This document shows positions 4,080 through 64,000 of a stretch of DNA of 64,000 bases, piece by piece. The notes beneath the pieces are model-generated. The model was not told the DNA's origin. It was given only the letters and a program-made list of their open reading frames with translations, and made no database searches. Position 1 is the first letter of the stretch. Every line of letters begins with the position of its first letter. The stretch is from assembly GCA_047495785.1 (NCBI GenBank), contig JBLDXI010000029.1, forward strand, positions 3,038,001 to 3,102,000. Reading direction: 5' to 3'. This stretch comes from Lepidodermella squamata (lineage: Eukaryota; Animalia; Gastrotricha). The translations under genes were made by a program, and so were the position numbers.

Positions 4080-4929
4080 AGGTCTTTGTCGCGAGCTTTG
4101 AGAAATGGAATTGCCTGGAATTTCGGCCGAATTTATAACCTTGAATCCGCATCATGGTGGAATGCTATTTAATACTTTCGCACCCGGTCAACTTTGCTAG
4201 CTAGCAAACTTTGCGTCTTCGCCAGCTAGCTCGGCCTTATTAGTGACATAACAACGCAACGCAGATATGCTCAGATAATAGAAGGTGATGACTAGTATAA
4301 GTATACTGCTTGCCCAGTAGTTTCAGCCAATTTGTCTTGGCATACAAAGTTTTACGGAAGATTTTGGCATTCTCACCAAATCACATGCCACTTTCTGCAA
4401 AAATAGGGGTAGCTGTGATCTTGTAAATGGGACACTATCATCAGTTCCGATGCAAGCCAGAGAAGGTGCTACAGTTTCTGTGATGCCTGGAAGGACTTAG
4501 TAGCGAATGTGTGTAGCGTTCGGCTGCGGCTGCGCATCAGTCTGAGATACACATTTCTGGGCAACCCTGAGGTTTTCCGCGTTTTAAGGCGGATGGGAGC
4601 ATCCAAGAGGTCTGAAATTCGAAAATTTGAAATCATCAAGAAAAACTGAGTAAGAGCATCACTGAATCCAAGAATCGTCCATCTTCAAGTGAACACACTT
4701 TTGCGATTTGCTGGAAAATATAGAAAATTCGCCAAACCCCACTTTTCATTTGTTGACGGTCATTTTATTTTGTGTAACAATTAATACTCGGATTTTTTTC
4801 TACCTATTCATTCATCATCATTTCATCATTTTGTCAGCACAAATTATCAGCGACAAGTTAAGTATACTGTAGCATGGGAATGTTTCGCTTGCCAAACCCT
4901 CTTCGATCAAATGTGAGATCAAAGGTTCT

Positions 4930-5845
4930 TTACGGCGTGGTGGATGAGCATCGATCCAACGAGAGGCCATACGCCGATGTTATCTGATAGTACACAAGAT
5001 TGGGGGCGTTACCAGCGCCAGTTCCAGCTACTAGAGCGAGACAGCAGGCTGAGTACGAGGTGAAGGCTTTTAATGAAGGGCTCGGCTTCTGAGATGGCAA
5101 TGGTTGATTTGCAATTAATAAAAAACGTAAAAAGAAGAAGGTTACTTACGACTCCTGTCCCTGCTTCAACATCACCGACAGCATTGGAAGTGTGCGGGAA
5201 GCGAACGCAGTTGCCAACCTTAACAACGGTGTCAGTTGCAGTAACCTTGTATGGGATACTATCATCAGTTGAGATGCAGGCAAGTGCCGGAGCTACAGAT
5301 GCCGTGAGGCCTGGGAGAACGTCGTAGCGAATGTTGCCGGTCAGTCCCGCACCAGTTGGGGTTGCAGCGGCGCAGCAGTCTGCGAACGAGTTAAACGAGT
5401 TCGGGGCAGCAGCTTGCTGAGAATACAACTGATTTATTACTCGATCTCATCGATACTCTATCTTACCGTGAATGTGTTAGGGCCGAAAGCAGCGGTGCAA
5501 GCCAGGCCGTTAGAAATGCACAGCTTGACAGTCTTAGAGACTGCTGTTCCAAAGGTCGAGCCAGTGCATAATTGGAAGGTTTGCTGTAGCAAAATGAAAA
5601 ATTTTGAGTTCCGAGGAATCATTATTTACAGACATTGGATTTACCGCTGGAGCGCACACCTGGCTGCCTTGGCATTGAGTTCCAGTCTTGTCGATGCAGT
5701 TCTTGGTTGATGTATCGCAGCTGTTCGACGTAGCAATACACGATTGGCCAGAAGGGCAAGAGCTCGAGCTAGTTGTTGAGGACGGGCAAGCGATAACGGC
5801 ACAGCAGGCGGCGGCAAGAACCGCCAGAGTCAATTCAAAAGCCAT
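4930..5845 (-). CDS. Secreted cysteine-rich protein, 4 exons
   Basis: ATG 5845, MAFELTLAVLAAACCAVIA signal peptide. Exons at about 5845-5645, 5584-5468, 5416-5150 and 5088-4930 are joined by three short phase-0 GT-AG introns into one open frame ending ...LDRCSSTTP* (TAA 4932-4930). It has a C-x5-C-x6-C-x6-C module and two F(N/T)S(F/Y)xxCC motifs. Confidence 0.8.
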
Positions 5846-5897
5846 TGTCAAAAATGTGAAGTCGAAAAATGGGCATGTTCTGAGAGAATTTTCGGCC

Positions 5898-5952
5898 CGT
5901 TTTATAGCGTCGTCGAATCATTTTTTAATAATTTCGCACCCGGTTAACTTTT
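5898..5952 (-). promoter_or_regulatory. TATA box plus upstream element conserved between paralogs
   Basis: TATAAAA on the minus strand about 55 nt upstream of ATG 5845. Plus-strand tttcgcacccggttaacttt (5932-5951) recurs as tttcgcacccggtcaacttt (4176-4195), upstream of the TATAAAT of the paralog. Confidence 0.55.
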
Positions 5953-8235: not shown

Positions 8236-10225
8236 GGAAATATAATCAAATATTACGTAACCGGAAAGTATTTTTTATATTAAAATTGTTGTTGGTGTTT
8301 TTTATTCAAATTCTTAAGGCCATCAAACATTCATCAAAGTGCGAAGGGAATGCGAATTTTCAAAAAAATTAATTTCTCATAGCAATGAAAATGTTAAGAC
8401 TGAAATCGAGGGTTCGCGATGCTTATTGTCATTGGGGGTTATTTTTAGTTGCGAATTTCTCGCGGTCATGTGCTTGGCACCCGGCGTATTTGTTTTTGAC
8501 GGTGTGGCTAGCGCCAAGAAAATATAAAACCAACCTCTCAAACTATTCACTAACACAACATGATGCGCATCCTAACCGCATAACATTTTTTATTATCATT
8601 TTTTTAATTACCGCAATTATTTTCAATTTTTTCGCACCTTGAGCAAAAATATCTCCGTTCTACCGCATAACGCTGGATACATTTGATCGGTGTAATTTTG
8701 GACACACTCTGGCTTTGCCAATTACAATCAACCATATAATTGAAAACTCACAATATTGCCCTTGCATATGCAAATGAGTGCGTCCAAAATTACCCGGAAT
8801 ATTGTCCAAATTGATGCATAACGTTTTTCCATAGCCAAAAATCAGGTAAAATTCGTAAAATCGCCAAAATTTACAGTAAAATTGGGAATAACCTTAAACA
8901 CTTTTTTACACAAAAATTAAATTAACAAATATTTTTTTAAATTATGAGTAATTAATTAAAACATGGTTTTGTCTTAAATCGCCCAATCCTAACATATACG
9001 GCACTGTTATTCTTTTCGAATTGAGTTTTTTCTGCACTTAATTTTTACATCGGAGCAAGGTATAGAGACATTTCATGCGACCGTTCGGCCTATCGAAAAA
9101 ATTCAATGAGAGCGTTTCGACTATTTAATGCATGGACATAAAAAGTAGTCGGAATTTTAGCATTTTTTCTTAATAGTAATAAAATAACCCATCTTCTGCA
9201 GGGTCTGCCACCTTTCTGATATTCACGGCTCGAATTAATCAAAGATATTTTTCACCCAGCTGAAACAGTTCAATAATATGATACGCAAGCATTCAATAAA
9301 ACACGTGTTACAATAAAATAGAGTGTAAAAAAGTGTCAACCCAGAGCTATCAGACGGCTTGTATAATTTAATAAGGCCAATTTCCTACATTTTTTATTTG
9401 ACTTCCTTATAAAATCCACTTTTTCATCCACCCATCCGCAGTGGTGTTAGTTGTTTCTACTTAATTTTATATTGATACATTTCCTTCGCAAACATTCAAA
9501 GTAAATTCTCATCGGTTCGATAAAGTAAATTTTCAGAGCCGGAATTTCGCTTGCTTTTGCATATTATTTGACAAAATTCTTCAACGCAGTACCACGCAAA
9601 AAATAATATTGGGTTCCGCAAGTTCCTATTTTAAAAAAATTAAGCTGGATTTTTTCGGTATCTTTTATGCGCGCAAAATGTCGCATAAATTCACGCAATA
9701 AATTTGAGCGCATAATTTGCGTGAGAATTTATATTATTATTATTATATTATATCACCTGGGTCATTTCTTGCGCGTCGTCATCATTATTCTGGCACATTG
9801 CATAATTAACGTACAAGGCATAAGCAAATGCGGGCTTTATATGAGTTTCGTGAAATAATGCCTTAATAAAACTTGCTATCGCACTAAAAGTCACGTTTAA
9901 TACATATTAAAGCTAAAATTTTATATTTTTATATAAATATTTCCGCAGGGTTGAAAAAAAGCATTATTACGTTAATTTTTCCCATTTATTTACACAGCAG
10001 TCTACTTTTTTTTTAATTATTATCTGATCTATCTTTCTGCCTCAAGGGTCCGCTTTGTTTTTTTCAACTTGCACCGAGTCTGAAAATACATTAGAGTCCT
10101 ATTAGAAAAATTTGTGATAGTCTTTGAAGCCTTAGGCATAATCTTAAAATAAGAGCACGCGCTGCAGTGGAAATAACAAAATTTACCCTCGAATTTTTAG
10201 TCACAAAAAATTATTTTATTCTAAA

Positions 10226-13335
<3,110 letters not shown>

Positions 13336-34121: not shown

Positions 34122-37052
34122 TTATCTAGCGTTAGCTTTTATCAAAATATCAATTGTTTTCTCCTTGTCCTCATCTGTAACTTCGATTTCGCATTCCATA
34201 GCGTAATGCAGAGCAGTTTTTCCATCATTGCAGACCGCGTTGACATTTGCTCGAAATTTATTGATCAGCGTATCGACTACTGCGTGTTCGCCGCGTTCTG
34301 CTGCTAACATCAATGGTGTACGGCCATCACTAGCGGCTGTCTCGACATTGGCGTTAAACTGGCCAGCCAGTGTCTTCACCAACTCGACGTGGCCATTACC
34401 GGCGGCGGCGTGCAAAGGTGTAACTCCACTTAATTCATAGACATCTGAAGTGGTAGCCTCGACATTGGCGTTGAACTGGCCAGCCAGTGTCTTCACCACC
34501 TCGACGTGGCCATTAGCGGCGGCGACGTGCAATGGTGTAATGCGATATTCATTGATGTTAGCTTCGACATTGGCGTTAAAGTTGCCAGCCAGTGTCTTCA
34601 CCATCTCGACGTTGCCCAAACCGGCGGCGATTTCCAAAGCTGTAAAGCCACCTAATTCACAATCTGTAAATATAGCTTCGACATTGGCGTTGAACTGGCC
34701 AGCCAGTGTCTTCACCACCTCGACATGACCATTAACAGCGGCGACGAGCAATGGTGTAAGGCCACATTCATTGTTGTTAGCCTCGACATTGGCGTTAAAC
34801 TTGCCAGCCAGTGTCTTTACCACCTCGACGTGGCCTTTACTGGCGGCGATGTGCAATGGTGCCAAGCCATATTTATCGTTGTTAGCCTCGACATTGGCGT
34901 TAAACTTGCCAGCCAGTGTCTTTACCATCTCGACGTGGCCATTACCGGCGGCGATGTGCAAAGGTGTATCGCCATATTTATCTGTAGCCTCGACATTGGC
35001 GTTGAATTGTTCGAGAAGGATCTCCAAAATGTCGTTGTATCCTAAGTCAGCAGCAATATACAGCAAAGGAGACCCATCTTCGTCTCTGCAGTTGGCGGTA
35101 AGACCGAGCTTCTTATCCGCCAGTAGCTCCACTAATTTCAACTTGTCGTTGTTCCGCACGCATTTAAATAACTCCTGATAAATAAAATCATAATCAACTC
35201 ATCGACGATGCCTAATTCAGTACCTGAACAGCCTCTGCATCTGGCTGTGGCGTTGTGGTAGTGGACAAGTCAGCCTGAAAATCGGAAGAACCACACTCAC
35301 GCTGATCTCTGGCTAAAAATCTCACCTCATTATCCTCTGGCGCGTTCAGTAGAAAGGTATCTTTCACGAGCTGATCAGTACTCGGTCGAACCTCAGCGTT
35401 TCTCGTGAGCATGGCCATTACAAATTCGCTGATACATTTTGAATAACCACGAGACTCGTCGAACTGTTGAGCTTCATGTCTAAAGGAAGCGACATTCAGT
35501 AGTTTCCGATTGAATCCTGTTAGCCGTAGATGGAGTAGGATCCACGAAGGGATGAAGGGTACGCTTGGATAAATTCAGCCTCAAATTTATCTAACAAAAG
35601 GCGGGTCCCCCTAGTGTTTTTAAGGTTGCCACGCCTGAACCTCTCGAGTAGGGTGTGACTTTTTTCATCCTACCAATGTCTTTTTTTTATCCGACCAATG
35701 TCTCATTTCATCCGGCGACCAAAAATGTGACTAAAATCATTCGACATTAAAATATCGATTTTCTCGATTTTCCCGAATTCGATTTGTCCATATCCCGTTC
35801 ATGCACCCTATTTTGGCCCCCGAACTGGCAGCATTTTATGGTTATAACAATCCGAGTGGTAGCTTTTTTACTGTAATTTTTTGAAAATGTGAAAAAGTCA
35901 GCAGGTTTTAGTCACATTTTTGGTTGTCGGATGGAATAAGACAGACATTGGTCGAATAAAAAAAGACATTGATCGGATGAAAAAGTTCTCTCGAGGTGGG
36001 GCGCCCACCTGTACCTCTTCTTCGCACACTGCCTGTGGGAATATGTGAAGTAGCTAATCTGACTTACGTCTCGATAGTTTGCATTGGGTCGAACTATAAA
36101 AAATAAATGAAACTTGAATGACAAGGTTAACTCATTGTCAAACTGGTATTTTGTAGTTCGCAAGTTGGTAAAGCGTAACACCCAGCGACCAGACATCACT
36201 AGCTTGTGACAAAGGCGCGCCGTTCCATACTTCAGGGGGCAAATAGCAATACATAGTTTCCAATAGAGATATCGTTTTTGATTTTCTGAAAAATTATGGC
36301 TATAAAATACATGTAAAATCTTAAATACGATGGCTTTACGTGTCGAAAGTTTCGATTATTCCCAACTCCGCCAATTTCACGGTGCCTTGATTCTTCGATA
36401 GTAGGATGTTGCTTGGCTTAATGTTGCCATGGACAATGTCTTGACTGTGTAGATAATGCAAAGCCGATACGAGCTGGCGAGACCAACTATGCAGCCTAAC
36501 TTCGCGAATCGGCGCACCCTTAGCTTTGATCAGAGTTTCGAAACTTCCGCCCCCGCAAAACTCCATCACCAAATATTGCAGGGATTGTTTATAACAAGCA
36601 ACGTCACTACCTAGGTCTTCCTCTTTTTGAACAAAATCTTTGAGATAGGTTTGACATGATAGTATTACATGCAAACCTTCGAACGTGCCAAATACTCGGA
36701 CAATGTTTGGGTGGTTAATTTTTACCATTTTCAAATCCTGAAAACAAGATTTAAATTCTTTATGACATCCCAAGTAGTTATCAGCAACTTTGGATTGTTT
36801 AATTCCATTTCCAATGTTCTCAAGAATTAATGGATTCCTTACTTTTTCGCGAAGAAGTCGGGTAATTGTTTCAAAGTCTTCCTCGAATTCCCCCTGCAGC
36901 TTGCTCAGATTAGCTTTTTTAATGACGAAGTCGTAGGGGTAACACGTATCGCGTCTGCATAGTTGTGCGTCTCTAAGGAGTTTCTCGTTACATAACAAAC
37001 CCTTAACGTCTGTGAACTCGGCTATTGATCGAAACGAGTAGGGTGAAGTCAT
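34122..37052 (-). CDS. Pseudokinase-ankyrin repeat fusion protein, copy A (apparently intact, multi-exon)
   Basis: ATG 37052. Exons give FVIKK, HPNIV, LVMEFC, HGNIKPSNILL, KLAELG, YLPPE, SDVWSLG, ML...RP, then a linker exon and a terminal exon (about 35176-34122) with 9 ankyrin repeats, 6 of them internal KTLAG-type repeats. Intron phases are compatible. Confidence 0.8.
35649..35987. mobile_element. hAT-type MITE in an intron of copy A
   Basis: 8-bp TSD ctctcgag (35641-35648, 35988-35995), 5' end tagggtg, ~45-bp inverted repeats. Absent at the equivalent site in copies B and C. The right terminus lacks its last ~9 bp. Confidence 0.8.
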
Positions 37053-37639
37053 CTCCAAGCAGCTAAAAATGTATTCTCAAAATGAAAAAGCGCAATAGGG
37101 CCGGTTCTAGGTAAGTGATAGGCCGTATACAATATCAACAGCAATGTTTCTTGCCGTTACGATGATAAGAAGCTTGCGCGGGCGAAGGCTTCTTTCATAC
37201 GCCACTGATATGAAAATCTGTCATAAGACGGTTTTCTGTTATTCATCTTAGTTCGGATATGCATGATCAAAGTCCAACTTATAAATAGAAACAGGTTCGT
37301 GATTCCGTTATTTTGTTGTCGTATTTAATCTTTAAAAAAAGTAAAATATAAAGAAACTAGTCCAATGGAGGCGGCTCGAACTATGGATCTTCTGACCACT
37401 ACGCTATCATTTTCGGTTGAGAATAAGAGCTGTGAATAGATGGGAATAAGGGAGTATGGTCAATTTTGCCATTGGGAAATTGAATTTCTCTATGGCTACC
37501 AAGAATCTTGGCAGCATTTCACTTGGAATTGGCCACAAAACCCCCATTTCATTATCTCGAAAATCTTAGGAAAGTCACAAAAACAACGAAAATCTCTATT
37601 TTACTTAAAAGCAATTTCACGTGCAAAAACAAAGATATG

Positions 37640-38540
37640 ACAAAATGAGGCGAAAAACGAGGTCGTCGAAATCTTTTGCTGGCAGTTGTCGCGATGCAGA
37701 TCCGGTTTTTCCTCCGGAATCGCGGTTTTGAGCAGCAACTGAAATTCAGCGACTAGCCATAGCAACGTTAGAGGCGACAATGACTGGTTTCTCGGCGCGT
37801 CTTCGACCGACAAAATTCGACCGGCCATCGCCCAACAGCATCACTGAGGTATACGCCGATCACCGATGACCTCACCATCTGTGCCACCTGTATGAATTTC
37901 AAAACCGCCCAAGAAGCAGCCCGATCTGAAATAAACTGAATCTTCGCCAGTGACTGGCACCAAAAATTCAATGCAAGCAAAAGCGAACATGGCATTCGGC
38001 ACTGTGCCAACCCAAAACCCAACTCAACCTATCCGTTAAGTGAATCGTGGACCCCGGATCCGGCGGTCACCTCCATCCGTGTCCTGGGCATTCACTTAGA
38101 TCCGGCGACTAACGTGGCAGACCCACATCGATCAAGCGCTACGTCGCTGCTCTCAGGACATCATGTCATTGTTCCACCGAATAGCCAGGACCCCAGGCCC
38201 GAATCTGCGCTGCGTCAGGATGGTGTATTTCTCCCTGATTCGCGCCATTCGCATATGGCAACATCGTCCTTGGCAGTATGTCAGCGCGACAACTGAAACG
38301 CCTCGAAGTGCTAGAAAACGACTGCCTGCGTGCCGCGTGCCGCCCTCCGGGCGCGCTGCAGTGACCGCTTGCAACCACCGCGCTCAAGCAGCACATCCAC
38401 GTCGAATCCCTTGACCGGTTCTTACAAAAATGTCAGACCCGCTACGTGGCCAACGCCGTTACAACCATCCTCCACGTACGAGAGGACATCGAAGACTCTG
38501 AAAGGACCCGCCAGCTCGGTCCCCCATCGCCTATCTTTAA
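37640..38540 (+). mobile_element. Decayed LINE reverse-transcriptase 3' fragment
   Basis: GC-rich. Fragments EVYAD, KFNASKSE, IRVLGIHLD and RMVYFSLIR follow LINE RT domains 5-7 and the downstream region, with many frameshifts. Confidence 0.65.
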
Positions 38541-39228
38541 ACCTAACTAAATGCTCAATGCTCAATTTCATACTCTTGCGAATACAAACAAACCTCTTTC
38601 CGCGTTTGCAATTGCCTCATGCTTTGTATAAGTATTCGGATACTTGTACATTTGTATATATCGTTAGCGACGTTGAATAACTCGGATTTAAGCTTGTTTA
38701 CGTCCGTTTCAAAGTTAGAGGTGGCAAGTAAAAATTCTTTTGTTTTACCTCTTCATTCACGATAAGAAGACTGAATGAATGAATTATGCATCAAGACTGA
38801 ATCGAATTACAACAATTGAAGAATTGTCATGTCCATCGTGGCAGCTGTTTCACGAGACGCCAAGTTCAAATTTTGGCGTTGACAGAAAAATCCTTGAAGA
38901 AACGCTGGCCTTGCGACTAAGCCGAAATCGAAGACTATCCAGAAAGTTTGGAAACAAAAACAATCAAGGCATATTTGCAGGATTTCATAATTTTCTATCC
39001 CTATGGCCCTGACCTTACTCGATATTTGAAAAAATTGAATGCCTGCTTTTCAATATATATCACTCGGGTAAAATCACACGAAAACAATCTCGATAACTGC
39101 GCTCAGCCGGCAGCAAATTAACGATAAAGAACTGAAACTTGAAACAATTCTAAACATTTCGAAAATTAAATAAGCAATCGCGGCAATTCTCATGAAAAAA
39201 ATCGCGATTCCGTTTCATATTACTCTAG

Positions 39229-41449
39229 TTATCTAGCGTCATTCGCTTTTATAAGGATGTCAATTGTTTTCTGCTTCTTCTCGGCTGTAACATACCAGAA
39301 GCAGTTTTTAGCGTAATGCAAAGCCGTTTTTCCTTCATTGCAGGCCGCGTTAACATTTGCTCGAAATTCATTTATCAGCGTATCGACTACGGCGTGTTCG
39401 CCGCGATTCGCTGCGACGATTAACGGTGTGTGGCCTTTTTTATTGGCAGCCTCGGCATTGGCGTTAAACTGGCCAGCCAGTGTCTTCACCACATTGACGT
39501 GGCCATTCCAGGCTGCGTCGTGCAAAGGTGTATCGCCACCTTTATCATTAACCTCAACATTGGCGTTGAACTGGGCAGCCAGCGTCTTCACCACCTCGGA
39601 GTTACCGTAATAAGCGGCCTTGTGCAAAGGTGTCCGGCCCCAGTTATTGGTAGCCTCAACATTAGCGTTGAACTGGCCGGCCAGTGTCTTCATCATCTCG
39701 ACATGTCCCTTCCAGGCTGCGTCGTGCAGAGGTGTATCGCCATATTTGTCTTTAGTCTCGACTTTGGCGCTTAATTGCTCGAGAAGGATCCACACAATGT
39801 CATTGTAGCCTGAGCGAACAGCAGTACATAGCAAGGACACCCATCTGTGTCTCTGCAGCTGGAGCTAAGACCCAGCTTCTTATCCTCCAGTAGCTTCATT
39901 AATTTCAACTTATCGTTGTTCCGCACGCATTTAAATAACTCCTGATAAACATAATCACAATAAACTCATCGACGTTGCATAATTCAATACCTCAACAGCC
40001 TTTGCATCTGGTTGCGGCGTTGTGGTCGTGGACAAGTCCGCAGTCCGCCTGAAAAACGGAAGAAAAACAGAATACTCACGCTGATGTCTAGCCTCTGGCT
40101 AAAAATCACACCTCGATATCCTCTGGTGCGTTCAGTAGAAAGGTATCGTTTACGAGCTGATCAGTGATCGGCCGAACCTCAGCGTTTCTCGTGAGCATGG
40201 CCATTACAAATTCGCTGATACATTTTGAATAACCACGAGACTCGTCGAACATTTGAGCTTCTTCTCTAAACAAAGCGAGATTCAGTAGTTTTAGATTGAA
40301 TCCTGTGAGCAGTGGATAAAGTCGGATCCCCGAGGTGAAGGTACTGGACAATTTCAGCCTCGAATTTACCTGACAGAAAGGTCCTCCTCATAGTTTTTAA
40401 GTTTTTCACGCCTGGACCCTCGACCTCTCGAGGTGGGGCACACTGCCTGAGAAAATATATGATAGTTAATCCGACTTACGTCAAGATTGTGTGCATCGGG
40501 TCGAACTAAATAAATAAATTAGTCTTGAATTTCAACGTTAACTCATTGCCAAACCGGTCTATTGTAGTTCGCGAGCTCGTACAGCGTCACACCCAGCGAC
40601 CAGACATCACTAGCTTGTGACAATGGCGCACCGTTCCATACTTCAGGGGGCAAATAGCAACACGTAGTTTCCAATAGAGATAACGTTTTTGATTTTCTGA
40701 AAAATTATGGCCAAAATCTATGTAACATCTCAAATACGATGGCTTTACGTGTCAAAGGCTTCGATTATCCCTAACTCTGCCAATTTCACGGTGCCTTGAT
40801 TCTTCGATAGTAGGATGTTGCTTGGCTTAATGTTGCCATGGACAATGTCTTGCTTGTGTAGATAATCCAAAGCCGAGACGAGCTGACGAGACCAACTATG
40901 AAGCCTAACTTCGCGAATCGGCTCACCGTTAGCTCTGATCAGAGTTTCGAAACTTCCGCCAACGCAATACTCCATTACCAGGAGGTTAAAACAAGTAACG
41001 TCACTACCCGGATATTTTTCTAAATTAAATGTTAAGGATTAATTTTTACGAGACAGAATTAGATGCGAACCTTCGAACGTGCCAAATACTCGGACAATGT
41101 TTGGGTGGCTAATTTTTACCATTTTCATATCCTGGAAAGAAGATAAAAGGATTCATAACATCTAGTTATCAGCAACACTGGATTTCTAAATTTCATTTCC
41201 AATGTTCTCACTGATTGCAAGAATGGATAGATTCCTTACTTTTTCGCGAAGAAGTCGGGTAATAGTTTCAAAGTCTTCCTTGAATTTCGCCTGCAGCTTG
41301 CTCAGATTAGCTTTTTTAATTACGAAGTCGTAAGGGTAACACCCATCGCGTCTGTATAAATACGCGTCTCTGAGGAGTTTCTCGCTGCCTAGCAAAGGTT
41401 GAACTTCCGTTAACTCGGCTATTGATTGAAACGAGTAGGGCGATGTCAT
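39229..41449 (-). pseudogene. Pseudokinase-ankyrin copy B (kinase-like exons open, ankyrin part out of frame)
   Basis: Same exon structure as A and C. A 7-bp tandem duplication gcggact-gcggact (about 40035-40048) in the linker exon leads to TGA, and there is a 1-bp deletion near 39833 relative to copy C. 6 ankyrin repeats (3 internal). Confidence 0.7.
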
Positions 41450-42019
41450 CTCCTAGCAGCTAGAACAAATGAAAATGAAGACGGTTCTATATGTATAAGT
41501 GTTAGTAGGTAGGCAATGTTTCTCTCTGAAAATTATGGTTACGGGAAGGTAGGAGAGGGTAGTGCGGGGGAAGGCTGCTTTCCAACATGCGTCACTGATA
41601 CGGAAATTTGTCGCTCGTCATAAGGCGATTTTTTCGCTACCCATCTATGAGGTGTTTATTATTCATCTTACGAAAAGAACAAGGGGGAAAGTTCGAATTA
41701 TTCCATTTATCTGATTCTGAGGAAATTCTGAGGAGTTGAAAAAGCCAAAATGATAACAATGCACTTATCTTAGGCTCAGAACATGTGTTATTCTAAAAAT
41801 GACTAAGCCAGTGCCAGTGCATGTTGCATAAGCTGGAAAAGATTCTTATCGTTTCACTTGTCTGCCACTAAATTCTGTCGCTCTCCAACCTTATGTTATC
41901 AAAATAACATTGGATAACGGTAAAATGCGTTGGTCTTCGTCACTCGGCGAAAGGAACGGCATTATAAACCCCCTTCTGCCAACTATAAAAATAAAGTTTC
42001 ATTAACGCTTGGAACAAAA

Positions 42020-42748
42020 AGTTCGGGTCATTTTACTTGCTGGGACACATCTAGTTGGGACCTTGCGTAAAACAGAAACGGCAACCCTCAGGAACTCTTG
42101 CAGCGACGCATCGAGCGTGGCAATCTGGCTGCTGCGACCGATGATCTCGGAACTTTTATGATTTTTCGGTTCTTTGATCGACGGGAAGTCATGCTTCTCT
42201 CAAACTTCCACCAAAATAAAAAATCCTTGGACCATTCGAAGCGTACAGGGCATCCCAGATTACTTCCACAAGCGTTGATTAACCACAATCTCTGCAAATG
42301 CGGCATCGATAAACAAGACCAGATGGCTTCTTACCACTCGCCATTGCGGAAGTCGCGACGGTGGGAATTCAAAGTTGCCGTAGAACTGCTGCTGAACAGC
42401 GCTGTGGTCAACACATGGTGTCTTTTGCGAAAAATGCCAGGTACAATGGATATCAGAGATGTGAGAAAGCAGATCATCGAAGGGATAACTCGGCCCTAGT
42501 ATCAATACCATTTATTCAAAAACCCAGCGTTGCGTGTCTCAAATGCTCAGCCAGGCTAATTTTTCTTGCTCTTGACATTTCCTTGGGGATTTCGAATAAA
42601 AATAACGGTATTGTATGTAGTAACGGTGAATTTCAACGGCACAAAATTCCGGTAGAAAATAACAAAACTTAGTGTCAATACGAAATACCGTTACTAAGTT
42701 ACGACCGCAACGGTACTTTTGCCGTAATTTGGGCAGTTAAAGTGTTAA
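42020..42748 (+). mobile_element. piggyBac transposase fragment with right terminus
   Basis: VGTLR...DRREVMLLSNFH...HNLCKCGIDKQDQMASYHSPLRKSRRWEFKVAVELLLNSAVVNTW matches the piggyBac DDD-core C-terminal part. The element ends ...gggcagttaaagtg followed by TTAA (42745-42748). Confidence 0.8.
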
Positions 42749-42762
42749 AACAATTGAAGGAT

Positions 42763-42918
42763 CAGTGCTCCGAGTACGGGGGGGAAGGGGGGTAAACAAA
42801 CCCCCCTGGCCTTCGAAAATTTCTGAAAAACGTAAGGGTCCCCCCTGTTGATTTGCTAATTTTGGGCTCAAAATGGCTCTATTTACCCCCCTCAGAGCTG
42901 GACCTAGTCGGATCACTG
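42763..42918. mobile_element. 156-bp hAT-type MITE
   Basis: TIRs cagtgctccgagta / tagtcggatcactg and a perfect 8-bp TSD tgaaggat (42755-42762, 42919-42926). A related-looking left end occurs near 58274. Confidence 0.8.
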
Positions 42919-43629
42919 TGAAGGATTGTTATGTTCAACGTAGCAGCTGTTTCACGAGACGCCAAGCTCAAATTTTGGCGTTGACAGAAAAAACCTGAAA
43001 AAACGATGGCCTTGCGACTAAGGCGAAATTGGAGACTATCCAAAAATTCTGGAAACAAAAGCAATCAAAGCCTATTTGCAGGATTTCATCGAAGTTATGA
43101 CTATCAGATAATCACCGTGTCGATGCCAGGGCTGATTCAATGAGCCGAGAACTTTGCCAAATCGGAGGTAAACATCGTGAAAAAAGTGCGTTATTTCGCA
43201 AAATACAAATTTCAAGACGTTCAAATTCAAGCAAGTTTAAAACAAACTTTCCGTGAAATAAGCTTTATTTTTACAACGTCTAAACACTGATAGTCGAATT
43301 TCTGCTATTTTTACGATTTTTTTTTAAATTTCCAGCATCAACAACTCGAATAAAATAGCAGGCAGCATAAAATAGCGGGGAAGCCGCTCGTTTTCTAAAA
43401 TTTTCGAAAAATTTCAATGCCTGCCTATGATTCCGAAAAATCACATCAAATCAATAGTGATAAAGCTGCTCGGATCCAACAAATTGTGACCAATGAACTC
43501 TTGCAACACATCAATTCTGAGAAATACGCCAAATAAGAACGATAAAACACTGAAACAATTCTGAAAATTTTAAACATTTATTGAGCGATCGCGGCAATTC
43601 CAATACAGAATCTTCATTCCATTGCAGAG

Positions 43630-46023
43630 TTATCTAGCATTCGCTTTCATCAGAATTTCAATTGTTTTCTGCTGGTCCCCGGCTGTAGCAAGAAAAAAGC
43701 AGTTATTAGCGTAATGCAGAGCAGTTCGTCCTTCATTGCAAGCCGTGTTGACATTTGCTCGAAACTCATTGATCAGCGTATCCACTACTGCGTGTTTGCC
43801 GCGATTTGCTGCGTATATTAATGGTGTCCAGCCACTGTTATTGGTAGCCTTGATATTGGCGTTGAACTGGCCAGCCAGTGTCTTCACCACTTCGACGTAG
43901 CCGAGCCGGGCGGCCTTGTGCAAAGGTGTATCCCCATCTTCATCTGTAGCCTCGACATTGGCGTTGAACTGGCCAGCCAGTGTCTTCACCACATTGACGT
44001 GGCCATTCCAGGCGGCACTGTGCAAAGGTGTATCGCCATTTTTATCTGTAGCCTCGACATTGGCCTTGAACTGGCCAGCCAGTGTCTTCACCACATCGAC
44101 GTGGCCATTCCGGGCGGCACTGTGCAAAGGTGTATCGCCATTTTTATCTGTAGCCTCGACATTGGCCTTGAACTGGCCAGCCAGTGTCTTCACCACATCG
44201 ACGTGGCCATTCCGGGCGGCACTGTGCAAAGGTGTATCGCCATTTTTATCTGTAGCCTCGACATTGGCCTTGAACTGGCCAGCCAGTGTCTTCGCCGCAT
44301 CGACGTTGCCATTCCGGGCGGCCTTGTGCAAAGGTGTATTGCCATATTTATCTTTAGTCTCGACATTGGCGTTGAATTGCTCGAGAAGGATCTCCACAAT
44401 GTCATTGTAGCCCTTCATTGCAGCAATACACAGCAAAGGACACCCATCTGTGTCTTTGCAGTCAGAGCTGAGACCGAGCATTTCATCCTCCAATAGCTTT
44501 CTTAATATCAACTTATCGTTGTTATTGACGCAGCCAAACAACTCCTGACAAATATAATCACAATAAACTCATCGACCTTCCCTAAAATTCAATACCTCAA
44601 CAGCCTTTGAATCTGGCTGTGGCGTTGCGGTTGTCCGCGGCAAGTCCGCCTGAAAACAGAAGAGGAAACCAAACTCACGCTGATCTCTGGCTAAAAATCT
44701 CACCGTTGCGTTCAGTAGAGAGCTATTTACGAGCTGATCAGTGCTCGATCGAACCTCGGCGTTTCTCGTGAGCATGGCCATTACAAAGTCCCGGATATAT
44801 TTTGAATAACCACGCGACTCTTCGAACTCTTGAGCTTCTTCTCTAAACAAAGCATAATAATCGAGATTGAATCGGAGTAGTTTCGGATTGAATCCTGCTG
44901 GTTTTTGGTTTTTGGTCTGTCTTGCCTCCGGACCTCTCGAGATGGGCCCCCACTATGGGGATGCTGTAACCCCCGTTCCCCTACCCCTCCTCCGCACACT
45001 GCCCGTATGCAAATATGTGAAGTAGTTAATCTGACTTACGTCTGGATAGATTGCATTGATCGGAACTATATGTAATAAATTAGACTTAAATTTCAACGTT
45101 AAATCATTGACATACCGGTCTTTTGTAGTTCGCGAGTTCGTATAGCGTAACACCCAGCGACCAGACATCACCAGCACGAGTCAAAGGTCTACTGCCATTT
45201 CCGTTCCATACTTCAGGAGGCAAATAGCCATGCATTCCATGCAGTAGAGATATCGTTCTTGATTTTCTGAAAATAAAGTTTGAAATATATGTAAAAACCT
45301 GAACTACTGATGGCTTTACGTGTCAAAGGCTTCCATTATTCCTAACTCCGCCAGTTTCACCGTGCCTTGATTCTTCGATAGTAGGATGTTGCTTGGCTTA
45401 ATGCTGCCATGGACAATGTCTTGCTTGTATAGATAATCCAAAGCCGAGACGAGCTGGCGAGACCAACTTCGAAGCATAAATTCGCGAATCGGTTCACCCT
45501 CAGCTTTGATCAGAGTTTCGAAACTTCCGCCTCTGCAAAACTCCATCACCAGGTGGTTAAAACAAGCAACGTCACTACCCGGATATTTTTCTAAATTAAA
45601 TGTTAAGGATTAATTTTACGTGACAGCATTACATACGAACCTTCGAACGTTCCAAATACTCGGACAATGTTTGGGTGGCTAATTTTTACCATTTTCAAAT
45701 TCTGAAAACAAGATAAAAAGACGTTATGACATCCAATAATCAGCAAAACAGGATTTCTGATTTTCATTTCAAATGTTCTCAATGGCTATTACGAAAATGG
45801 ATCGATTCATTACTTTTTCGCGAAGAAGTCGGCTAATTGTTTCAAAGTCTTCCTTGAATTTCGCCTGCAGCTTGCTCAGATTAGCTTTTTTAATGACGAA
45901 GTCATAAGGATAGCGCTCATTGCGTCTGCATGAATATGCGTTTCTGAGGAGTTTCTCGCTACGTAACAAAGGCTTAACGTCCGTGAAGTCGGCTATTGAT
46001 TGGAACGAGTAGGGCGATGCCAT
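43630..46023 (-). CDS. Pseudokinase-ankyrin repeat fusion protein, copy C (apparently intact, multi-exon)
   Basis: ATG 46023. Motifs FVIKK, HPNIV, HGSIKPSN, KLAELG, YLPPE, GDVWSLG. Terminal exon has 8 ankyrin repeats (5 internal), three of them near-identical 102-nt units. Confidence 0.8.
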
Positions 46024-47400: not shown

Positions 47401-47917
47401 CACTAGCTTGATTCCAACAGAATGTTTGAATATCTAGCGAGATTCCATACCTCAACTTATCCTGGACAACTTCGACCTCGAATAAGAAAAAAAGATTACA
47501 ATTAATTGTGTTGCGAACTGATGCAATGAAATCTTTCGAATTTTTGAGCGCGTTTTTTTCGAAATGAGCATTTGTTAATTGAAGTTGAAGCCTGTATTTC
47601 AGCAACCCTGGAGACTTTCAACTTGTTTTTGATATCGTTCGGCTCCTCGCCAATCGGTCTTAAAAGCGGCATCAACATCCCACAATGTAAACTTTTTTAC
47701 CAAGCCTGTTAACATTCGTATCAATATCAAGATCAATATCAAGAGTAAAATAGCGCTTCTTTTTGCATCATAAAAATCCACAACCGCATGCAACAACACG
47801 GAAACAACCATCCGACAGAGACAGGTCAAAAAACGTCAGCGTATTTGGCCTAAATGGTCAAGACAAAAGGAGAATTATAACCGGGACTGAGCCAAGTAGA
47901 TCACTTGTAGATCATTC

Positions 47918-49165
47918 TTAATCCAGTTGGCCACTCATTTTCAAAAATAGGAAAAGGTCGATGATAAGCAAAGAGAAAATTGAGAAGACAGTGACTGCCA
48001 AGTCGATAAGTCGAACCTTAGTTAGGCGCAACTTACCGATAGCAACTCGCTGCCGGCCCCATTTCGACTTCGCAATATTGCAAGCAATCAACGCGTAAAT
48101 TGTCATCAGAACACAATATAGCACTTTCATCGTAATCATAACGATCAAGTAAACAGTTTGAGACGTACGCGGAATCTGGCTGAAAACCAGAGCCAATAGA
48201 AACGATATTGCTATAACAACTGTGATGCAATAAGTAGGCCTATCAGGGTGTTTAGGATTCATAATCAAAGCACACATCTGTAAGATTACAGTCGCAAAAA
48301 CTGGGAGAAAAATATTGCCGACATAGTAGTTATACCTTCGTTGCAAGGAAAATGACATTGTAAGATGGCTGTACCTGCCCTTTTGGGAAATATTGGAAGC
48401 AGATGAGCCACGTATTGAATCCCAGACGTCAGTATCAGAAACGAATCTTGCTGCGCTAGCAATTGCGAAACTGGCCTCTGTTATTTTGAGAACTGAGACA
48501 CTGTCCCTAGGTTCAACCTCAATCGAACAATTAAGTTTGTCGTAGGGGAAGTTGCGGATGTCAAAGCCGTAGCAGTACGTTTTCATAGGTTTGAAAACAC
48601 GGACGTAGCCGTAAACAGGACTCTCTGATGCGGCGTAGAAAATTCGCAAATCGGGTTCGCCGGCTAAAATGTCGCCTGAATCCATGCCATTCATATGCTC
48701 AACAACAGGCCGCCACGATCTTGAAGTGTCACTTGGTACATATATCGTGGTTTCATTCGACATGCTAGGTACATCGTTCGTACTCATTGGTTTGCAACCT
48801 GAAGGCGGCATGTACCAAGTGAGCCAATAGCTCGCGAGAACTGTTAAACTGATAAAGAAAATATAGCCTTATCCGAAGCCTATTCTGACTTACCTCTGAG
48901 AAAGATCGTCAACTTCAACCAATCTGTGCATACGCACATAGATTGAGATGTTGATGGGCAGGTCGGTTAGTCGGCCTCTGTGCCCAATCTCCAGGTCGAG
49001 CTCGATCTCGCGCGCGAGAGGACACGCGCTATTGAAGAAGTAGTCGGATATTTCTTTCGTGTAGCTCCGCTTATCGATATCATCGTTTGTATTTTGCAAA
49101 AATCCAGATGGCCGCGCCACTGTGAAGTGTACAGCAAAAAGGATGATGCAAACGCTGATCGCCAT
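47918..49165 (-). CDS. Divergent Cys-loop (pentameric) ligand-gated ion channel subunit, copy 1
   Basis: ATG 49165 with signal peptide; 45-nt intron 48893-48849. Motifs LVEVDDLSQSLTV...W, WRP, Cys-loop CYGFDIRNFPYDKLNC, LQRRYNYYVGNIFLP (M1), CITVVIA (M2), QIPRTS, then M3 and M4. Confidence 0.85.
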
Positions 49166-49539
49166 TTTCAGTATGTTGCAATTTGCAGGCTCGATCTGAT
49201 GCCAACAGGTCGGATGCACCCATTCGAATTTAAGCGAATTAAATACATAATTTAAGCGTAAATGTTATTATCAACTCAGACGGGCGATTGCACCGGCGTT
49301 GCTACTAGGCACGAACAATGACGCCGGTTAAAATCGCTGCAAGAATACGCCATGATGCGTGATATCGTTTCATTAATAATGCAAATACTCGTAAACAACA
49401 AGAAAAAAAGATTTTTCCTGGAGCCATTTGCATGCCAAATATTTTTTTTAACAAAACGTGGCATAATTTATTAACCAATATGAACATTTTGCCACTGTTT
49501 TGCAGGATTGGATTGGAAAAATTGTCATCCGGAGATCCC

Positions 49540-50065
49540 AATGGGATGGGGAAAATTTAGCGAAATCAATAATTGTTTCCTAATTCAGCAGTTGGGGAAA
49601 CGTTGGGGAAGAACGGATTTCTGAGTGGTTTTTTAATGATTAAATAGTCAGTTTTTTCCTGTTTGATTTGCATCAATAATTGACAATCGCTTATTGCTTC
49701 CGGCGTAATTTTTGCCGAAGGCACAAATAGAGAATCAATAATTGTTCCCTCTCTCGGCCTTTTTTTAGGATTTTTAGGATAACCTTAGGAAGAAGCGGAT
49801 TTTTGAATAGGTTTCTATTGATTAAATAGTCAGTTTTTTTCCTGTTGGATGATCATGAATCATCAATAATTGACAATGGTCTCTGGCGGGATGTTTACCA
49901 AAGGGACTGGGGGAAAATTAGAGAAATCAATACGTTGTTCCTTAATTCGGCATGTTCGATTGGGAACAAAAGCGGATTTTGAGTGTGTTTTTAATGATTG
50001 AAATGTCCGTTTTTTCCTATTGGACGATCATCAATAATTGATAATCTGCTGGCGTGATTTTTCAC
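49540..50065. repeat. Three diverged ~180-bp tandem repeats upstream of the channel gene
   Basis: Unit ...aaatcaataattgtt.cc...cggattt...gattaaatagtcagtttt...catcaataattgac recurs three times. About two units are present upstream of copy 2 (55755-56760). Confidence 0.7.
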
Positions 50066-52560: not shown

Positions 52561-54142
52561 GAAATGATCGGCTAGAAGTTCAGCTTTTTCCAGGAATTCT
52601 ATAGAATTCTATTCTCGAGTTCGGTTTATTTCCGATTGAAGTTGCTGCTTTTCTTGTTCTTCCACTGTTCCACTGAGAAAAAGTGAGTGCTGCAGAATAT
52701 GAATAATGTTAAAGTAAAGCTATTAGAAAAGGCGTAACTCACTCATGTTTAATTGCTATTTCCATGAATTATCTCCACTTGCGTTTTATTTCATTTTTTG
52801 CCTTTTACCTGGATGCAAGAATCAGGAATCTGCCTTTTCAATTACACCACCTGACCGGAAAAACAAAAAAATCACCGGCCCGACAAACAAGAAAATTAGC
52901 ACAAAGCAAACGTGACCAAAATTTCAAATTTAATTTTTTTAAATGATTAAATGATTAAATAAATTGACGGGAGAACATTTGACTCAGGTGTCTCGGGAGA
53001 AGCAGAAGCAGAAAATCATCTGCGAAGTTCAAAGGCAGTTGAATAACGTGAAATTTTTCATTTCACCATACTTGAATTCATGTTACCGAGCACTCATCCA
53101 GCAGACTGGAGATCCGCTTTGAATTAGCTGAAACATTTCCCCCAAAATAACTAGGTTTTTTCCGAAAAATGTTCGGTACTTATCAAAACGTCAGTTTATT
53201 CGCAAAAAATGTAAACTTTAAAGTTTTCAAAAGGGATAAAAGAGATATCCTCACGCAGCACGCAGCGCTCAATGAATCTCATCAAATATCATCGAAAAGT
53301 GCAACATGACCGCAAACAGGTGAAAAGTGGGGCTTGAAATTTACCGTAATTTCCAGAAATCACAAATAGAGTGTTGGCTTGAAAGGAGTGACTTGCGGAT
53401 TTAACCAGATTCTTAGCCAGGTTCTCCTACAGATGTTGATTCTTCTATTGTCAGACCTCATGGAGGGCAGTATCCACCTCAAAAGAATGGAATCCTTTAA
53501 TGTCGCTGAACAGCTTTTAGGTTCACCCTCACACGTTCGTTTGATTGAATCAAACGTTTCGAATGTCTAGCGAGATGTTTTTGATATCGCTGAACTCCTG
53601 GACTCAATGGGTCATAAGCCCCATCCATACTCTTGGGTATTCGGCTCAGAGCCTTGCCGTTCGGGACACATTACTCTCTATGTTACTCTATGTTAGAGAT
53701 GTTACTCTCTATGCTATAGCGCATGGCATGATAGAGGGCGTTTCCTCATCGCTTCATTATACAAACTAGCCAACCATATTCTTAGGCACCTTAATGAATT
53801 TCAAAAAACCCGGATTGATTTTCCATTTTAAGTTTTCCCATTGGAGAAGAAAAAAGTAGCGAATATCTTTAATAGTAGGTACTGTTTAAAAAAGTATGCC
53901 AAACCTCACTTTCCACTAGTTCAAGGTCATTTCAGAGATATCAATATCAAGAGTAAAATAGCGCTTCTTTTTGCATCATCAAAAAATCCACAACCACATG
54001 CAACAACATGAAAGTAACGATCCGATGTAGACAAGGCTAAAAACATCAAAACTAACTAACCCGCTGTCCGGGTTCGGATTATGTAGCATCTAATGTATTA
54101 TAACCGGGACTGAGCCAAGTGGCCTTTTGGAGATCATCATTC

Positions 54143-55388
54143 TTAATCCAGCTGCCCATTCATTTTCAAAAATAGAAAAAGGTCGATGATAAGCAAAGAG
54201 AAAATTGAGAAGACAATGACTGCCAAGTCGATAAGCCGAACCTTAGTTAGGCGCAACTTGCCGATAGCAACACGCTGCCGGCCCCACTTTGACTTGGCAA
54301 TGTTGCAAGCAATCAGAGCGTAAATCGTCATCAGACAACAATAGAGCACTTTCATAGTAATCATAACGATCAAGTAAACAGTTTGAGACGAACGCGGAAT
54401 CTGGCTGAAAACCAGAGCCAATAGAAATGATATTGCTATAACAACTGTAATGCAATAAGTAGGCCTATCAGGGTGTTTAGGATTCATAATCAAAGCACAC
54501 ATCTGCAAGATTACTGTCGCAAAAAGTGGCAGAAAAATGTTCGCAACATAGTAGTTATACCTTCGTTGCAGGGAAAATTGCATTGAAAGATGGTCGAACC
54601 TCGAGTTTTTGGTTATATTGTAAAACACGGAGTTTCCTATTGAATCCCAGACATCAGTATTAGAAACGAATCTTGCATAGCTAGGAATCGCGAAGCTCGC
54701 CTCTGTTATTTTGATAATCCCTCCGTAATCTCTAGGTTCCAACTCAATCGAGCAATCAAGTCTGTCGTAGGGGAAGTTGCGAATGTCAAAGCCGTAACAA
54801 TACGTCTTAATAGGTTTGAAAATACGGACGTAGCCGTAGACAGGACTCTCTGATGCGGCGTAGAAAATTCGCAGATCTTCGCTGCCTAAAATGTCGCCCG
54901 AATCCATGCCATTCATATGCTCAACAACAGGCCGCCACGATTTTGAAGTGTCACTAAGGACGTATATCGTGGTTTTATTCGACATCGTCGGTACATCGTT
55001 CGTGCTCATTGTTTTGCAACCTGAAGGTGGCAGGTACCAAGTGAGCCAATAGCTCGCGAGAACTGTTAAACTGATAGAAAAAATATAGCTTTTTTCCTAT
55101 GCCGGAATCGGCTCACCTTTGAGAAAGATCGTCAACTTCAATCAATCTGTGCATACGGACATCGATTGAGACGTTGATGGGGAGGTCGGTTAGTCGGCCT
55201 CTGTGCCCAATCTCGACGTCGAGCTCGATTTCGCGCGCAAGAGGACACGCGCTATTGAAGAAAGTGTCGGATATTTCTTTCGTGTAGCTCCGCTTATCGA
55301 TATCATCATACGTATTTTGCAAAAATCCAGATGGCTGCGCAATTGTGAAGTGTACAGCAAAAAGGAAGATGCAAACGCTGATCGACAT
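54143..55388 (-). CDS. Divergent Cys-loop ligand-gated ion channel subunit, copy 2
   Basis: ATG 55388 and the same single short intron (about 55116-55071). Cys-loop CYGFDIRNFPYDRLDC; four TM segments nearly identical to copy 1. Confidence 0.85.
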
Positions 55389-55882
55389 TTTCAGTATGTT
55401 GCAATTTTCAGACTCGAACTGATGCCAACAGGTCGGATGCACCCATTCGAATTTAAGCGAATTAAATACATAATTTAAGCGTAAATATGTTATTATCAAT
55501 TCAGACGGACGATTGCAGCGGCGTTGCCAATGGGCACGGCCGGTTAAAATCGCTGCAAGATACGCTGTGGTGCGTGATATCGTTTCATTAATTATGCAAA
55601 TACTCGTAAATAACAAAAGCTGGATATTTTTCCTGGAGCCATTTGCATGCCAAAATTTTGTTGTTTTTTTACAAATCGTTGCATAGTTAATTAACCAATA
55701 TCAAAATATTGCTACGGATAGGGTTGGAAAAATTGTCATCCAGAGTTCCTAATGCGATTGGGGAAACATGTAGAGATATCAATAATTGTTCTCTCATTAA
55801 TCATTATCATTTATCATTTATCATTTCTCGGCAAATTCTTTTTGGGAAAATGTTGGGGAAAACGGATTTCTGAGGGGTTCTG

Positions 55883-62165: not shown

Positions 62166-64000
62166 GACAATGTTGGGGATTTGATTTGATATCAAAATCA
62201 AAATCAAATCTCGCTCCCTCTAAAATCATTTCCTGCTCCCAAAATCAAATCTCAAAACACTGAAATCAAATCCCAAAATCGTTGAAATCTCTGGAAATCA
62301 TGTAAGCTTCGCAGTCTGACTGCGACGAGGAAGATAGGCAGAGAGCTGCCGAAGCATCACGCATTAAACCGCCGCCGAAAAATTCGAAAAAGCAGCAAGC
62401 TGCCTCATCGTCACCCAAAGAAGCATTTGACGTTGAAGAAGAATCTAATTCTGGCAATAACGGGAATGATAACAAAAAATGGACCGATGAACGGGTGTTG
62501 CAGCGATTGCATTGTTCAAGCCAAAGAAATCCATGATCGATAAGGGGAAGGTGAAGGCGATGCCGATCTATAATAAAATCGGCCGGGAATTGTCAACCAA
62601 CGAAGTTAATGTTACCGGACCTCAGGTTAAGTCGAAGCTTCTCGCCCTTAAAGCTTCTTTGACAAGCTATAACACCGCAACCAGCAAGACTGGCTCTCAG
62701 GCCGACGAAATCGAGGAACCGCCATTTTATGAGCAGCTGAAAGATTTGTACGAAGATGACCCTTCCGTCAAACCCGTGACAAACCTGGCTCCAGGTGGCG
62801 TTGTACGCAACGACGATGACGACTTTGCGTCGGAAAAGGAGGAAGAGTCGCAGTCAAAGAAGAAGTCTCGAAAGAAACCCAAGCAGCCGGAGATGACCCC
62901 TTTTCAACAAAGCTTTCTCGAGGAATTCAAACAAATCGAAAAGCGCCGGGCGGACCAATACGACAAACTTCTGGCGATACTGGAAAAAAATGCATCGAGC
63001 GAACAGGGCACTCCGAAGCGTTCTCGTTCTGTCATTATTCAGGATGATTTGGATCTTCCGGATATTCCGGAACCTGATAGCTGAATCTTTGAATCGTGAA
63101 TGAGAAGATCTGTTGTACTAGAAGCAATTCGAGTGATAATAAATGCGGAAGAGTTTTAATCTCAACTATATGAAATGAGGTGTATATTTTTATGTTTAGG
63201 TTCATTTTACCAAGCATTATTCGTAATGAATCCCATAGCGCTATTCATGGCGGCTAGTTATTTCCTGGGATCTTGTGCGCCAGCTGGTCTGATTTCTGAG
63301 GCATTACAGACGAAGAGGCAGCGGCGTAAACATTACCGTGTCCTTGGCTATTATGAAAGGGTAGTTCCCAACTATGATCCAGACGACTTTATCCTGCATT
63401 TTCGAATGACTCGTCGAAAAGCTGTGCAGCTGACCAATTTCCTCGTCAAACAAGGAATAATCATCTCCAATTTAGCCAAACGCCGACGTGGGCGGCCTCC
63501 GTTACCACCGCATGCAAAGGTATTGATGGTACTTCGATATCTTGGTACGAACGAAACCCTAGCAGCTATTGGTGACAAATGGAATGTTGCTACTTCGACC
63601 GTTTGTAATGATGTATACTAAGTCTGTCGTGGTCTATCCAGGTTTCAAAGTCGTTTCATACGATGGCCAAATCATGCTGAAATCGATGAAATTTCAAATC
63701 GCGTGTACGAAAAAACCGGGTTTTCTGGCTTCGTAGGAGCAATAGATGGGACTCACATTCAAATATCCGCGCCTACGAATCAAGGACATGTTTACACCAG
63801 TTACAAGAAGCAGTGCTCACTGCATATGCAGGCTGTTGCTGACGACCGTGGTCGTTTCATCGATGTGTTTATTGGTTACCCTGGCTCCTGCGGCGATCGG
63901 CGTGTTTACAATGAATCGCTGCTAAAGGAAGCGATACGAAACGATTCTAAAACGTTTTTTCCCAGCAACAAGCATCATTTAACAGGAGATAGTGCTTATC
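62166..64000 (+). mobile_element. PIF/Harbinger transposon (runs off the window end), decayed
   Basis: Myb/SANT(MADF)-like ORF at 62300-63084 (KKWTDER...TGPQVKSKL...TGS...PFYEQL; stop at codon 2 and a frameshift). Transposase from ATG 63226 (HFRMTR, LRYLGT, GAIDGTHI, QAVAD, GYPGSCGD, LTGDSAY; frameshift near 63615). Starts right after TTAA, where homology to the paralogous flank ends. Confidence 0.9.

Follow-up and report, generated by a model that had tools for sequence, protein, structure and literature searches.

A tandem array of predicted pseudokinase–ankyrin genes with a diversified binding face in the gastrotrich Lepidodermella squamata

Results

Three paralogues share one exon plan

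The analysed window, a 64,000-nucleotide stretch of the Lepidodermella squamata genome, contains three co-oriented paralogues on the minus strand, referred to here as A (34122-37052), B (39229-41449) and C (43630-46023). Each is modelled with eight exons, six encoding a pseudokinase, followed by a linker exon and a single ankyrin exon (Table 1), and GT-AG boundaries are present at 21/21 introns of these models, which bears out the common plan proposed in an earlier note on this DNA. Exons 1-6 measure 210/61/271/142/26/154 nt in both A and B, and 210/61/271/151/26/139 nt in C. Most introns are 49-66 nt long, with intron 1 at 105-112 nt and intron 5 at 197-588 nt, and introns 2, 3 and 4 may match the human NEK1 boundaries c.214, c.464 and c.606. 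On these models the kinase exons would be spliced to the ankyrin exon, and the open frames of A and C predict proteins of 655 and 608 aa, respectively. A Pfam search identifies Pkinase (E 3e-20) together with Ank families, and neither a signal peptide nor a membrane span is found in the predicted proteins (maximum 19-residue hydropathy 1.2).

A coding exon within intron 5, which would break A through its MITE-like insert and would also break C, was considered and rejected: the three genes have a pyrimidine-rich phase-2 acceptor in common, conservation climbs at this acceptor, and the resulting spacing fits both a relative and NEK1. Weaker, open acceptors for exon 6 are possible 78-93 nt upstream of the chosen one.

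Table 1 Features of the pseudokinase–ankyrin locus, in window positions
Feature	Position	Strand	Description
A exons 1-4	36144..37052 (37052-36843, 36737-36677, 36610-36340, 36285-36144)	-	predicted pseudokinase, N-lobe to subdomain IX
A exon 5	36068..36093	-	26 nt; length and phase as in B and C
MITE-like insert, A intron 5	35649..35987		terminal inverted repeats and an 8-bp direct repeat on its flanks; B and C lack it
A exon 6	35326..35479	-	end of kinase C-lobe
A exon 7	35224..35274	-	Thr/Pro-rich linker, 17 aa
A exon 8	34122..35174	-	ankyrin: N-cap, then 6 internal repeats spaced 34-39 aa with hairpin insertions, then 2 C-terminal cap repeats
B exons 1-6	40112..41449	-	predicted pseudokinase, open frame
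B exon 7	39991..40048	-	58 nt; 7-nt tandem duplication giving a frameshift and a stop at codon 307
B exon 8	39229..39941	-	ankyrin, 3 internal repeats; frame shifts again near 39835
C exons 1-6	44704..46023	-	predicted pseudokinase (HGS, ELG), open frame; branch dN/dS ~1
C exon 7	44596..44649	-	linker, 18 aa
C exon 8	43630..44544	-	ankyrin, 5 internal repeats of 34 aa each, the second and third identical at the DNA level

A predicted dead kinase under purifying selection

The kinase domain has no Gly loop and retains the Lys (FVIK); the HRD motif reads HGN, HGN and HGS in A, B and C, respectively, and DFG is replaced by ELG, with a PPE motif also present in A. With the HRD and DFG aspartates gone, the domain is predicted to be a catalytically dead pseudokinase, in line with the earlier reading. 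None of the kinase exons of the three genes carries a frameshift or stop (0/18), and the domain is under purifying selection, with a dN/dS of 0.49, confidence intervals below 1 and a dS close to intron divergence, although the C branch looks unconstrained (~1, against 0.33-0.41 for A and B). Within the domain, conservation peaks in the dead catalytic loop, and the activation-segment region varies among paralogues.

Among solved structures, the kinase piece from the window is closest to MAP4K3 and STK11, with NEK1 at rank 15; a kinase profile places GCN2 first and NEK1 second; and NEK1 is the top solved match for both of the two nearest relatives. Homologue searches, queried with single exons or with the open frame of A across introns 1-2 and covering limited length ranges, found no close homologue of the kinase ORF and none of the ankyrin exon, for which the best matches reach 29-46% identity. 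Fragment, viral, metagenome and Atlas searches over similarly limited length ranges yielded nothing beyond generic kinases or ankyrins; two metagenome loci with a human-gut label (L021, L026) were set aside. A distant kinase–ankyrin relative was found in another public sample. NACHT, NB-ARC and death-type effector domains are absent from the searched ORFs, and the exon models leave no room for NACHT or NB-ARC.

Amino-acid change is concentrated on the ankyrin groove

The arrays contain 6, 3 and 5 internal TPLH-type repeats in A, B and C, and these counts, like the residues listed at three helix-1 sites, agree with the earlier note. The array of A additionally carries hairpin insertions of 1-5 residues that the note had overlooked. 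Identity to the repeat consensus is 0.81-0.89, exceeding the 0.7 cut-off of PMC13449251; by a stricter criterion of 85% over 100 aa, only C qualifies.

The seven repeat positions of highest entropy (2, 3, 5, 10, 13, 14 and 33) coincide with the positions that designed ankyrin libraries randomise, and the probability of matching this pre-set list by chance is 2e-7. The note had equated the variable helix-1 positions with those randomised in DARPins; the residue after TPLH, however, is a fixed Leu in classic DARPins. The ANK-N5C library, by contrast, does vary that residue (PMC4308713). Library positions were picked since natural ankyrins vary there, and a match to them alone is therefore expected. 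Single-sequence structure prediction, at low confidence (pLDDT 63), confirms the ankyrin fold only; the assignment of variable positions to the groove derives from PMC4308713.

Across all 14 repeats, dN/dS is 3.2-5.3 in the groove and 0.4-0.6 in the scaffold (p 1e-3 to 3e-9; two trees and a multi-hit model), so that values above 1 fall on groove positions and are not spread evenly over the scaffold, as expected of the variable binding surface proposed earlier. Similarly, the tree-free groove pN is 0.575, compared with ~0.19 in neutral simulations with recombination, and the observed value was reached in 0/250 neutral runs in each of eight settings. Between closely related repeats, changes at groove codons come with no silent change. 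The excess of amino-acid change on the binding face thus survives tree, multi-hit and recombination controls. CpG hypermutation is an unlikely source of the variation, as the window shows no CpG depletion (observed/expected 1.2). The same groove-variable pattern recurs in an unrelated ankyrin array, and the signature is therefore no proof of immunity.

Gene B is broken

The earlier note had described all three genes as kinase–ankyrin fusions. A and C are open, but B cannot make a kinase–ankyrin fusion protein, a defect that the note missed: exon 7 opens with 7 additional nt that introduce a stop, and 1 nt is missing in exon 8. These shifts do not cancel out, as the stop falls between them. Transposon fragments lie between and inside the three genes. 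Repeat exchange between B and C is not claimed, since B3 and C4 differ at 6/90 nt, which shared descent can explain.

Discussion

We tentatively favour the reading that A, B and C belong to a lineage-specific birth-and-death family of variable non-self sensors. The proteins would be cytoplasmic binders whose ankyrin groove holds a protein ligand and has been diversified through repeat duplication, hairpin indels and selected amino-acid change, with the dead NEK-like domain retained as a scaffold or switch. Their most likely use would be recognition of foreign proteins from a microbe, virus or mobile element, and the signal might be relayed to a family member with an active kinase, or to a different effector. 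A variable binder is favoured because the eight-exon frames of A and C are open and lack a signal peptide or membrane span, because the kinase is constrained and groove change exceeds neutral expectation, and because fungal NLR repeats evolve alike. The sensor reading is weakened by the missing effector domain, the seemingly unconstrained C kinase branch, the broken B, the similar pattern in the unrelated array, and the fact that Giardia Nek-ankyrin proteins have no demonstrated immune role. A bolder extension, by analogy with plant kinase–pseudokinase receptors, seems rather improbable: a large set of germ-line-encoded, DARPin-like intracellular receptors, evolved independently of NLRs, in which NEK-derived dead kinases carry the sensor and signal via active paralogues.

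It is also conceivable, if doubtful, that the paralogues are endogenous adaptors, each directing a dead NEK-like scaffold to a host partner or location of its own (cilia, cytoskeleton or germ line). Gene conversion would homogenise the scaffold and selection would keep repeat-specific contacts, inflating dN/dS; this combination of homogenised silent sites and retained contacts can push dN/dS past 1 with no arms race involved, which weighs against the sensor reading, and is compatible with the simulation run. The top rank of NEK1 among solved matches of the nearest relatives and the unrelated array with the same pattern point this way, as do the Giardia Neks, which localise to the cytoskeleton or cytoplasm and of which one dead member was relocalised after deletion of an ankyrin repeat (PMC3218828). 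Rapid loss and change of repeat number (B broken, C2 identical to C3, 6/3/5 repeats), however, ill suit stable partners, and zero silent change between close repeats that differ at groove codons also argues against adaptors.

An unlikely alternative is that the array blocks a foreign or selfish protein directly, by binding it and without signalling, the dead kinase serving as bait or stabilising partner. This would fit the absence of an effector domain, the divergent activation-segment region and the C kinase branch, but not the clear constraint on the A and B branches or a dead catalytic loop that is the best conserved block. Functionless decay of a recombination-prone tandem family, to which the two frameshifts in B, the transposon fragments and the unconstrained C kinase could be ascribed, is very improbable and already disfavoured by the selection tests: the kinase exons are intact with dN/dS confidence intervals below 1, the scaffold is invariant and groove change lies far above neutral.

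No publication on this family came to light, and kinases, ankyrins and immunity go unmentioned in the gastrotrich genome paper. Should the ligands be foreign, the locus would add to a little-studied animal group a variable receptor system that is not of the NLR kind, and would supply natural ankyrin binders bearing loop insertions; otherwise, it would be another case of homogenised repeat arrays diversifying.

Comparison with known systems

The earlier note had allowed for a match to a conserved single-copy gene. RIPK4 and ANKK1, which are encoded by conserved single-copy genes of the TKL group, are animal proteins whose N-terminal kinase is followed by ankyrin repeats at the C terminus; here there are three tandem copies, and no RIPK-type kinase is among the solved-structure matches listed. 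RNase L and ILK are conserved and place ankyrin repeats N-terminal to a pseudokinase, RNase L coupling an ankyrin sensor to a dead kinase, in the opposite domain order to the kinase-first paralogues. Plant ZED1/RKS1 pseudokinases and tandem kinases derive from receptor-like kinases and lack ankyrin arrays. By analogy, A, B and C may resemble RNase L, ILK and the plant proteins, in which a dead kinase serves as switch, adaptor or decoy.

Among described designs, the Nek-ankyrin expansion of Giardia, an association not seen outside Giardia according to PMC3218828, comes closest, and the architecture, which the earlier note did not recognise as a described family, is in this respect not new. Both combine an N-terminal kinase, Nek-like in Giardia and possibly here, and mostly dead, with a variable ankyrin array, and both show quick gene turnover with pseudogenes and no membrane span (PMC3218828). 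The genes described here differ in being multi-intron genes of an animal, with near-identical TPLH-type 34-aa repeats in place of Giardia TALM repeats and a measured excess of groove change. The two designs are probably convergent, because searches over limited length ranges turned up no close relative of either domain; no named Giardia protein occurs among the ankyrin matches, and the kinase matches are nameless. Our analysis extends the design to an animal and adds a measured selection signature on the binding face.

As the earlier note had suggested, fungal NLRs offer a comparable mode of evolution, their ankyrin repeats being internally conserved and variable in number, with positive selection on the interaction surface (PMC4986451, PMC13449251). 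A, B and C, compared within one genome, share these features without a NACHT or NB-ARC domain or a cell-death effector. Designed libraries (DARPin, ANK-N5C; PMC4308713), though artificial, likewise combine a fixed scaffold and caps with variation at the same seven positions.

Gene models and integrity

Genes A, B and C, minus-strand paralogues sharing about 76–85% DNA identity, are all accommodated by a single predicted eight-exon GT-AG model, in keeping with the earlier note's description of three co-oriented genes of one exon structure. Pieces of the models were searched against the databases one by one, and the joined model was examined by local translation and comparison. The acceptor chosen for exon 6 is pyrimidine-rich and identically placed in all three genes, with identity over 60 nt rising from 22–48 before it to 51–56 after it, and both the MITE in A and a scrambled stretch in C fall within intron 5. 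The predicted products of A (655 aa) and C (608 aa) contain no internal stops and are predicted to be soluble.

The kinase exons of B are open. Its linker exon (exon 7, 39991–40048) carries a 7-nt duplication, as a result of which translation would end at codon 307, with the stop lying 1 nt short of the last exon junction; its ankyrin exon lacks one base near 39835. B is therefore either a recent pseudogene or the producer of a kinase-only protein, which might comprise 306 aa. Alternatively, these lesions may be assembly errors.

In gene A, introns 1 and 2 (105 and 66 nt, within 36611–36842) are in frame and stop-free and the intron 2 acceptor used by B and C is lost; A may therefore retain intron sequence here or splice to a shifted acceptor. 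A pyrimidine-rich AG lies 10 nt upstream of the ATG in each gene (37062, 41459 and 46033, minus strand), possibly an acceptor for trans-splicing or the 3' end of an intron in the untranslated region.

A constrained pseudokinase and its relatives

The kinase domain matches Pfam Pkinase (E 3e-20) and retains the beta-3 Lys. Because the Gly loop is absent, HRD is replaced by HGN, HGN or HGS and DFG by ELG, established kinase rules class it as a pseudokinase, which agrees with the catalytically dead fold proposed earlier. The domain is constrained, without freedom to drift: pairwise dN/dS is 0.35–0.61 with intervals below 1 (joint estimate 0.49), and dS of 0.20–0.24 lies near the intron divergence of 0.22–0.28. 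This constraint is uneven, with private nonsynonymous:synonymous changes of 15:13 in A, 12:11 in B and 29:10 in C, where dN/dS is about 1 (Fisher p 0.049).

When single domains were searched against 1.84 billion proteins, two Logan proteins came out as the best matches. P0029 (SRR21279729) appears to be an active kinase; the end of its ORF is a probable phase-2 splice donor whose position coincides with that of intron 3 in A, B and C. P0142 (SRR23086389) carries HGD and DLG and shares with the three genes a phase-1 intron after an 'FE' motif. Its kinase is followed by a 59-nt phase-0 intron and then an in-frame ankyrin exon, so the kinase-ankyrin layout is present in at least one other sample; another ankyrin frame ends just upstream, all of this lying within 1–1252 of the locus. 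NEK1 is the best PDB match of both proteins, although not of the window's kinase piece, and P0142 groups with the window kinases with support of only 86/74. 'NEK-like' is a fair label for the latter, membership being unproven.

Selection on the ankyrin binding face

Between conserved caps, A, B and C carry 6, 3 and 5 internal repeats, the numbers originally reported. Hairpin length also varies in A, and C contains an exact recent repeat duplication. In the ANK-N5C library, positions 2, 3, 5, 10, 13 and 33 are randomised and form one continuous surface on the beta-turn and helix 1 in the crystal structure (PMC4308713). The seven most variable of the 34 repeat positions are this set plus 14, so the clustering claimed for library-randomised binding positions holds. 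In classic DARPins, position 14 is used in place of 10.

Since any ankyrin array would be expected to show such a match, rates were tested, with the groove positions fixed in advance and codon models covering all 14 repeats. The dN/dS ratio is 3.2–5.3 in the groove versus 0.4–0.6 in the scaffold, hence neither even nor confined to values at or below 1. The groove's excess over 1 is stable across two trees and when multi-nucleotide changes are allowed. It recurs when the analysis is limited to A (p 0.002–0.006), to B and C together, or to the intact pair A and C. A tree-free statistic gives groove pN of 0.575 versus pS of 0.175, a pN never reached in neutral simulations with 1–30 recombining segments.

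Proposed function and alternatives

The observation is real, the arrays are selected and two of the three copies are intact. Neutral decay, with the lesions of B on one side and the constrained kinase and selected grooves on the other, is very improbable. The groove signal is carried by only 14 repeats, at 3–7 codons per repeat, and the same signal would be expected if conversion homogenised silent sites while selection retained each repeat's own contacts. Furthermore, the same pattern (pN 0.55 versus pS 0.10) appears in a control pair of ankyrin genes from an unrelated metagenome contig of high GC content. The signature thus denotes selected binding faces in homogenised arrays and does not identify a ligand as foreign.

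Our preferred, though tentative, reading is a variable intracellular binder, in which the ankyrin array would bind non-self proteins inside the cell and the dead kinase would serve as a scaffold or switch for an active paralogue. Of the variable-receptor idea put forward in the earlier note, the variable, selected binding face stands, and the immune-like sensor role is only a candidate one. Adaptors for host partners, for instance scaffolds of cilia or the cytoskeleton, whose ligands would not be foreign, are a rather unlikely alternative, and direct blockers or decoys seem a little less probable still.

The control genes (JGI 3300066022, 8738–11645) are in tandem on an apparently eukaryotic contig, lack a kinase and have 34-aa TALM-type repeats. 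Their helix-2/turn motif is very similar to the window's, through either convergence or shared origin, and they show the same excess groove change.

Genomic surroundings

The window has the character of animal DNA, with short introns and genes for PAPS synthase and ligand-gated channels.

Features of the window and their basis
Feature	Position	Basis or remark
Small Cys-rich repeat proteins, probably secreted	898–1338, 3660–4151, 5537–5917	Minus strand
GC-rich ORFs, possibly retroelement gag or ORF1	1655–3087	Cys/His knuckle-like motifs; no Pfam match
PAPS synthase gene	10599–12693	ATP-sulfurylase and PUA-like domains
Gene A	34122–37052	
GC-richer stretch between A and B	37700–38650	By eye resembles a decayed LINE reverse transcriptase end; no match in Pfam or plasmid searches
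Gene B	39229–41449	
piggyBac-like DDE transposase fragment between B and C	42098–42496	Pfam DDE_Tnp_1_7
Gene C	43630–46023	
Two divergent ligand-gated ion channel-like genes	47732–49585, 53940–55798	DNA 86% identical
Harbinger-type element	62491–64000	DDE_Tnp_4 transposase (63622–63999) and a second ORF upstream

Comparison with known systems

Among the papers listed by a literature search for kinase-ankyrin expansions in invertebrates, none used that term. The three genes share their mode of repeat evolution with fungal NLRs that have highly conserved repeats; unlike these, they have no NTPase domain and are therefore not NLRs. The design, which the earlier note did not recognise as a described family, has the architecture of the Giardia Nek-ankyrin family, where most Neks are dead and ankyrin arrays occur in 133 of the 198 (PMC3218828). 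As the repeats of A, B and C, unlike those of that family, are not of the TALM type, and kinship is unestablished, the three genes are analogues that work like the Giardia family without belonging to it.
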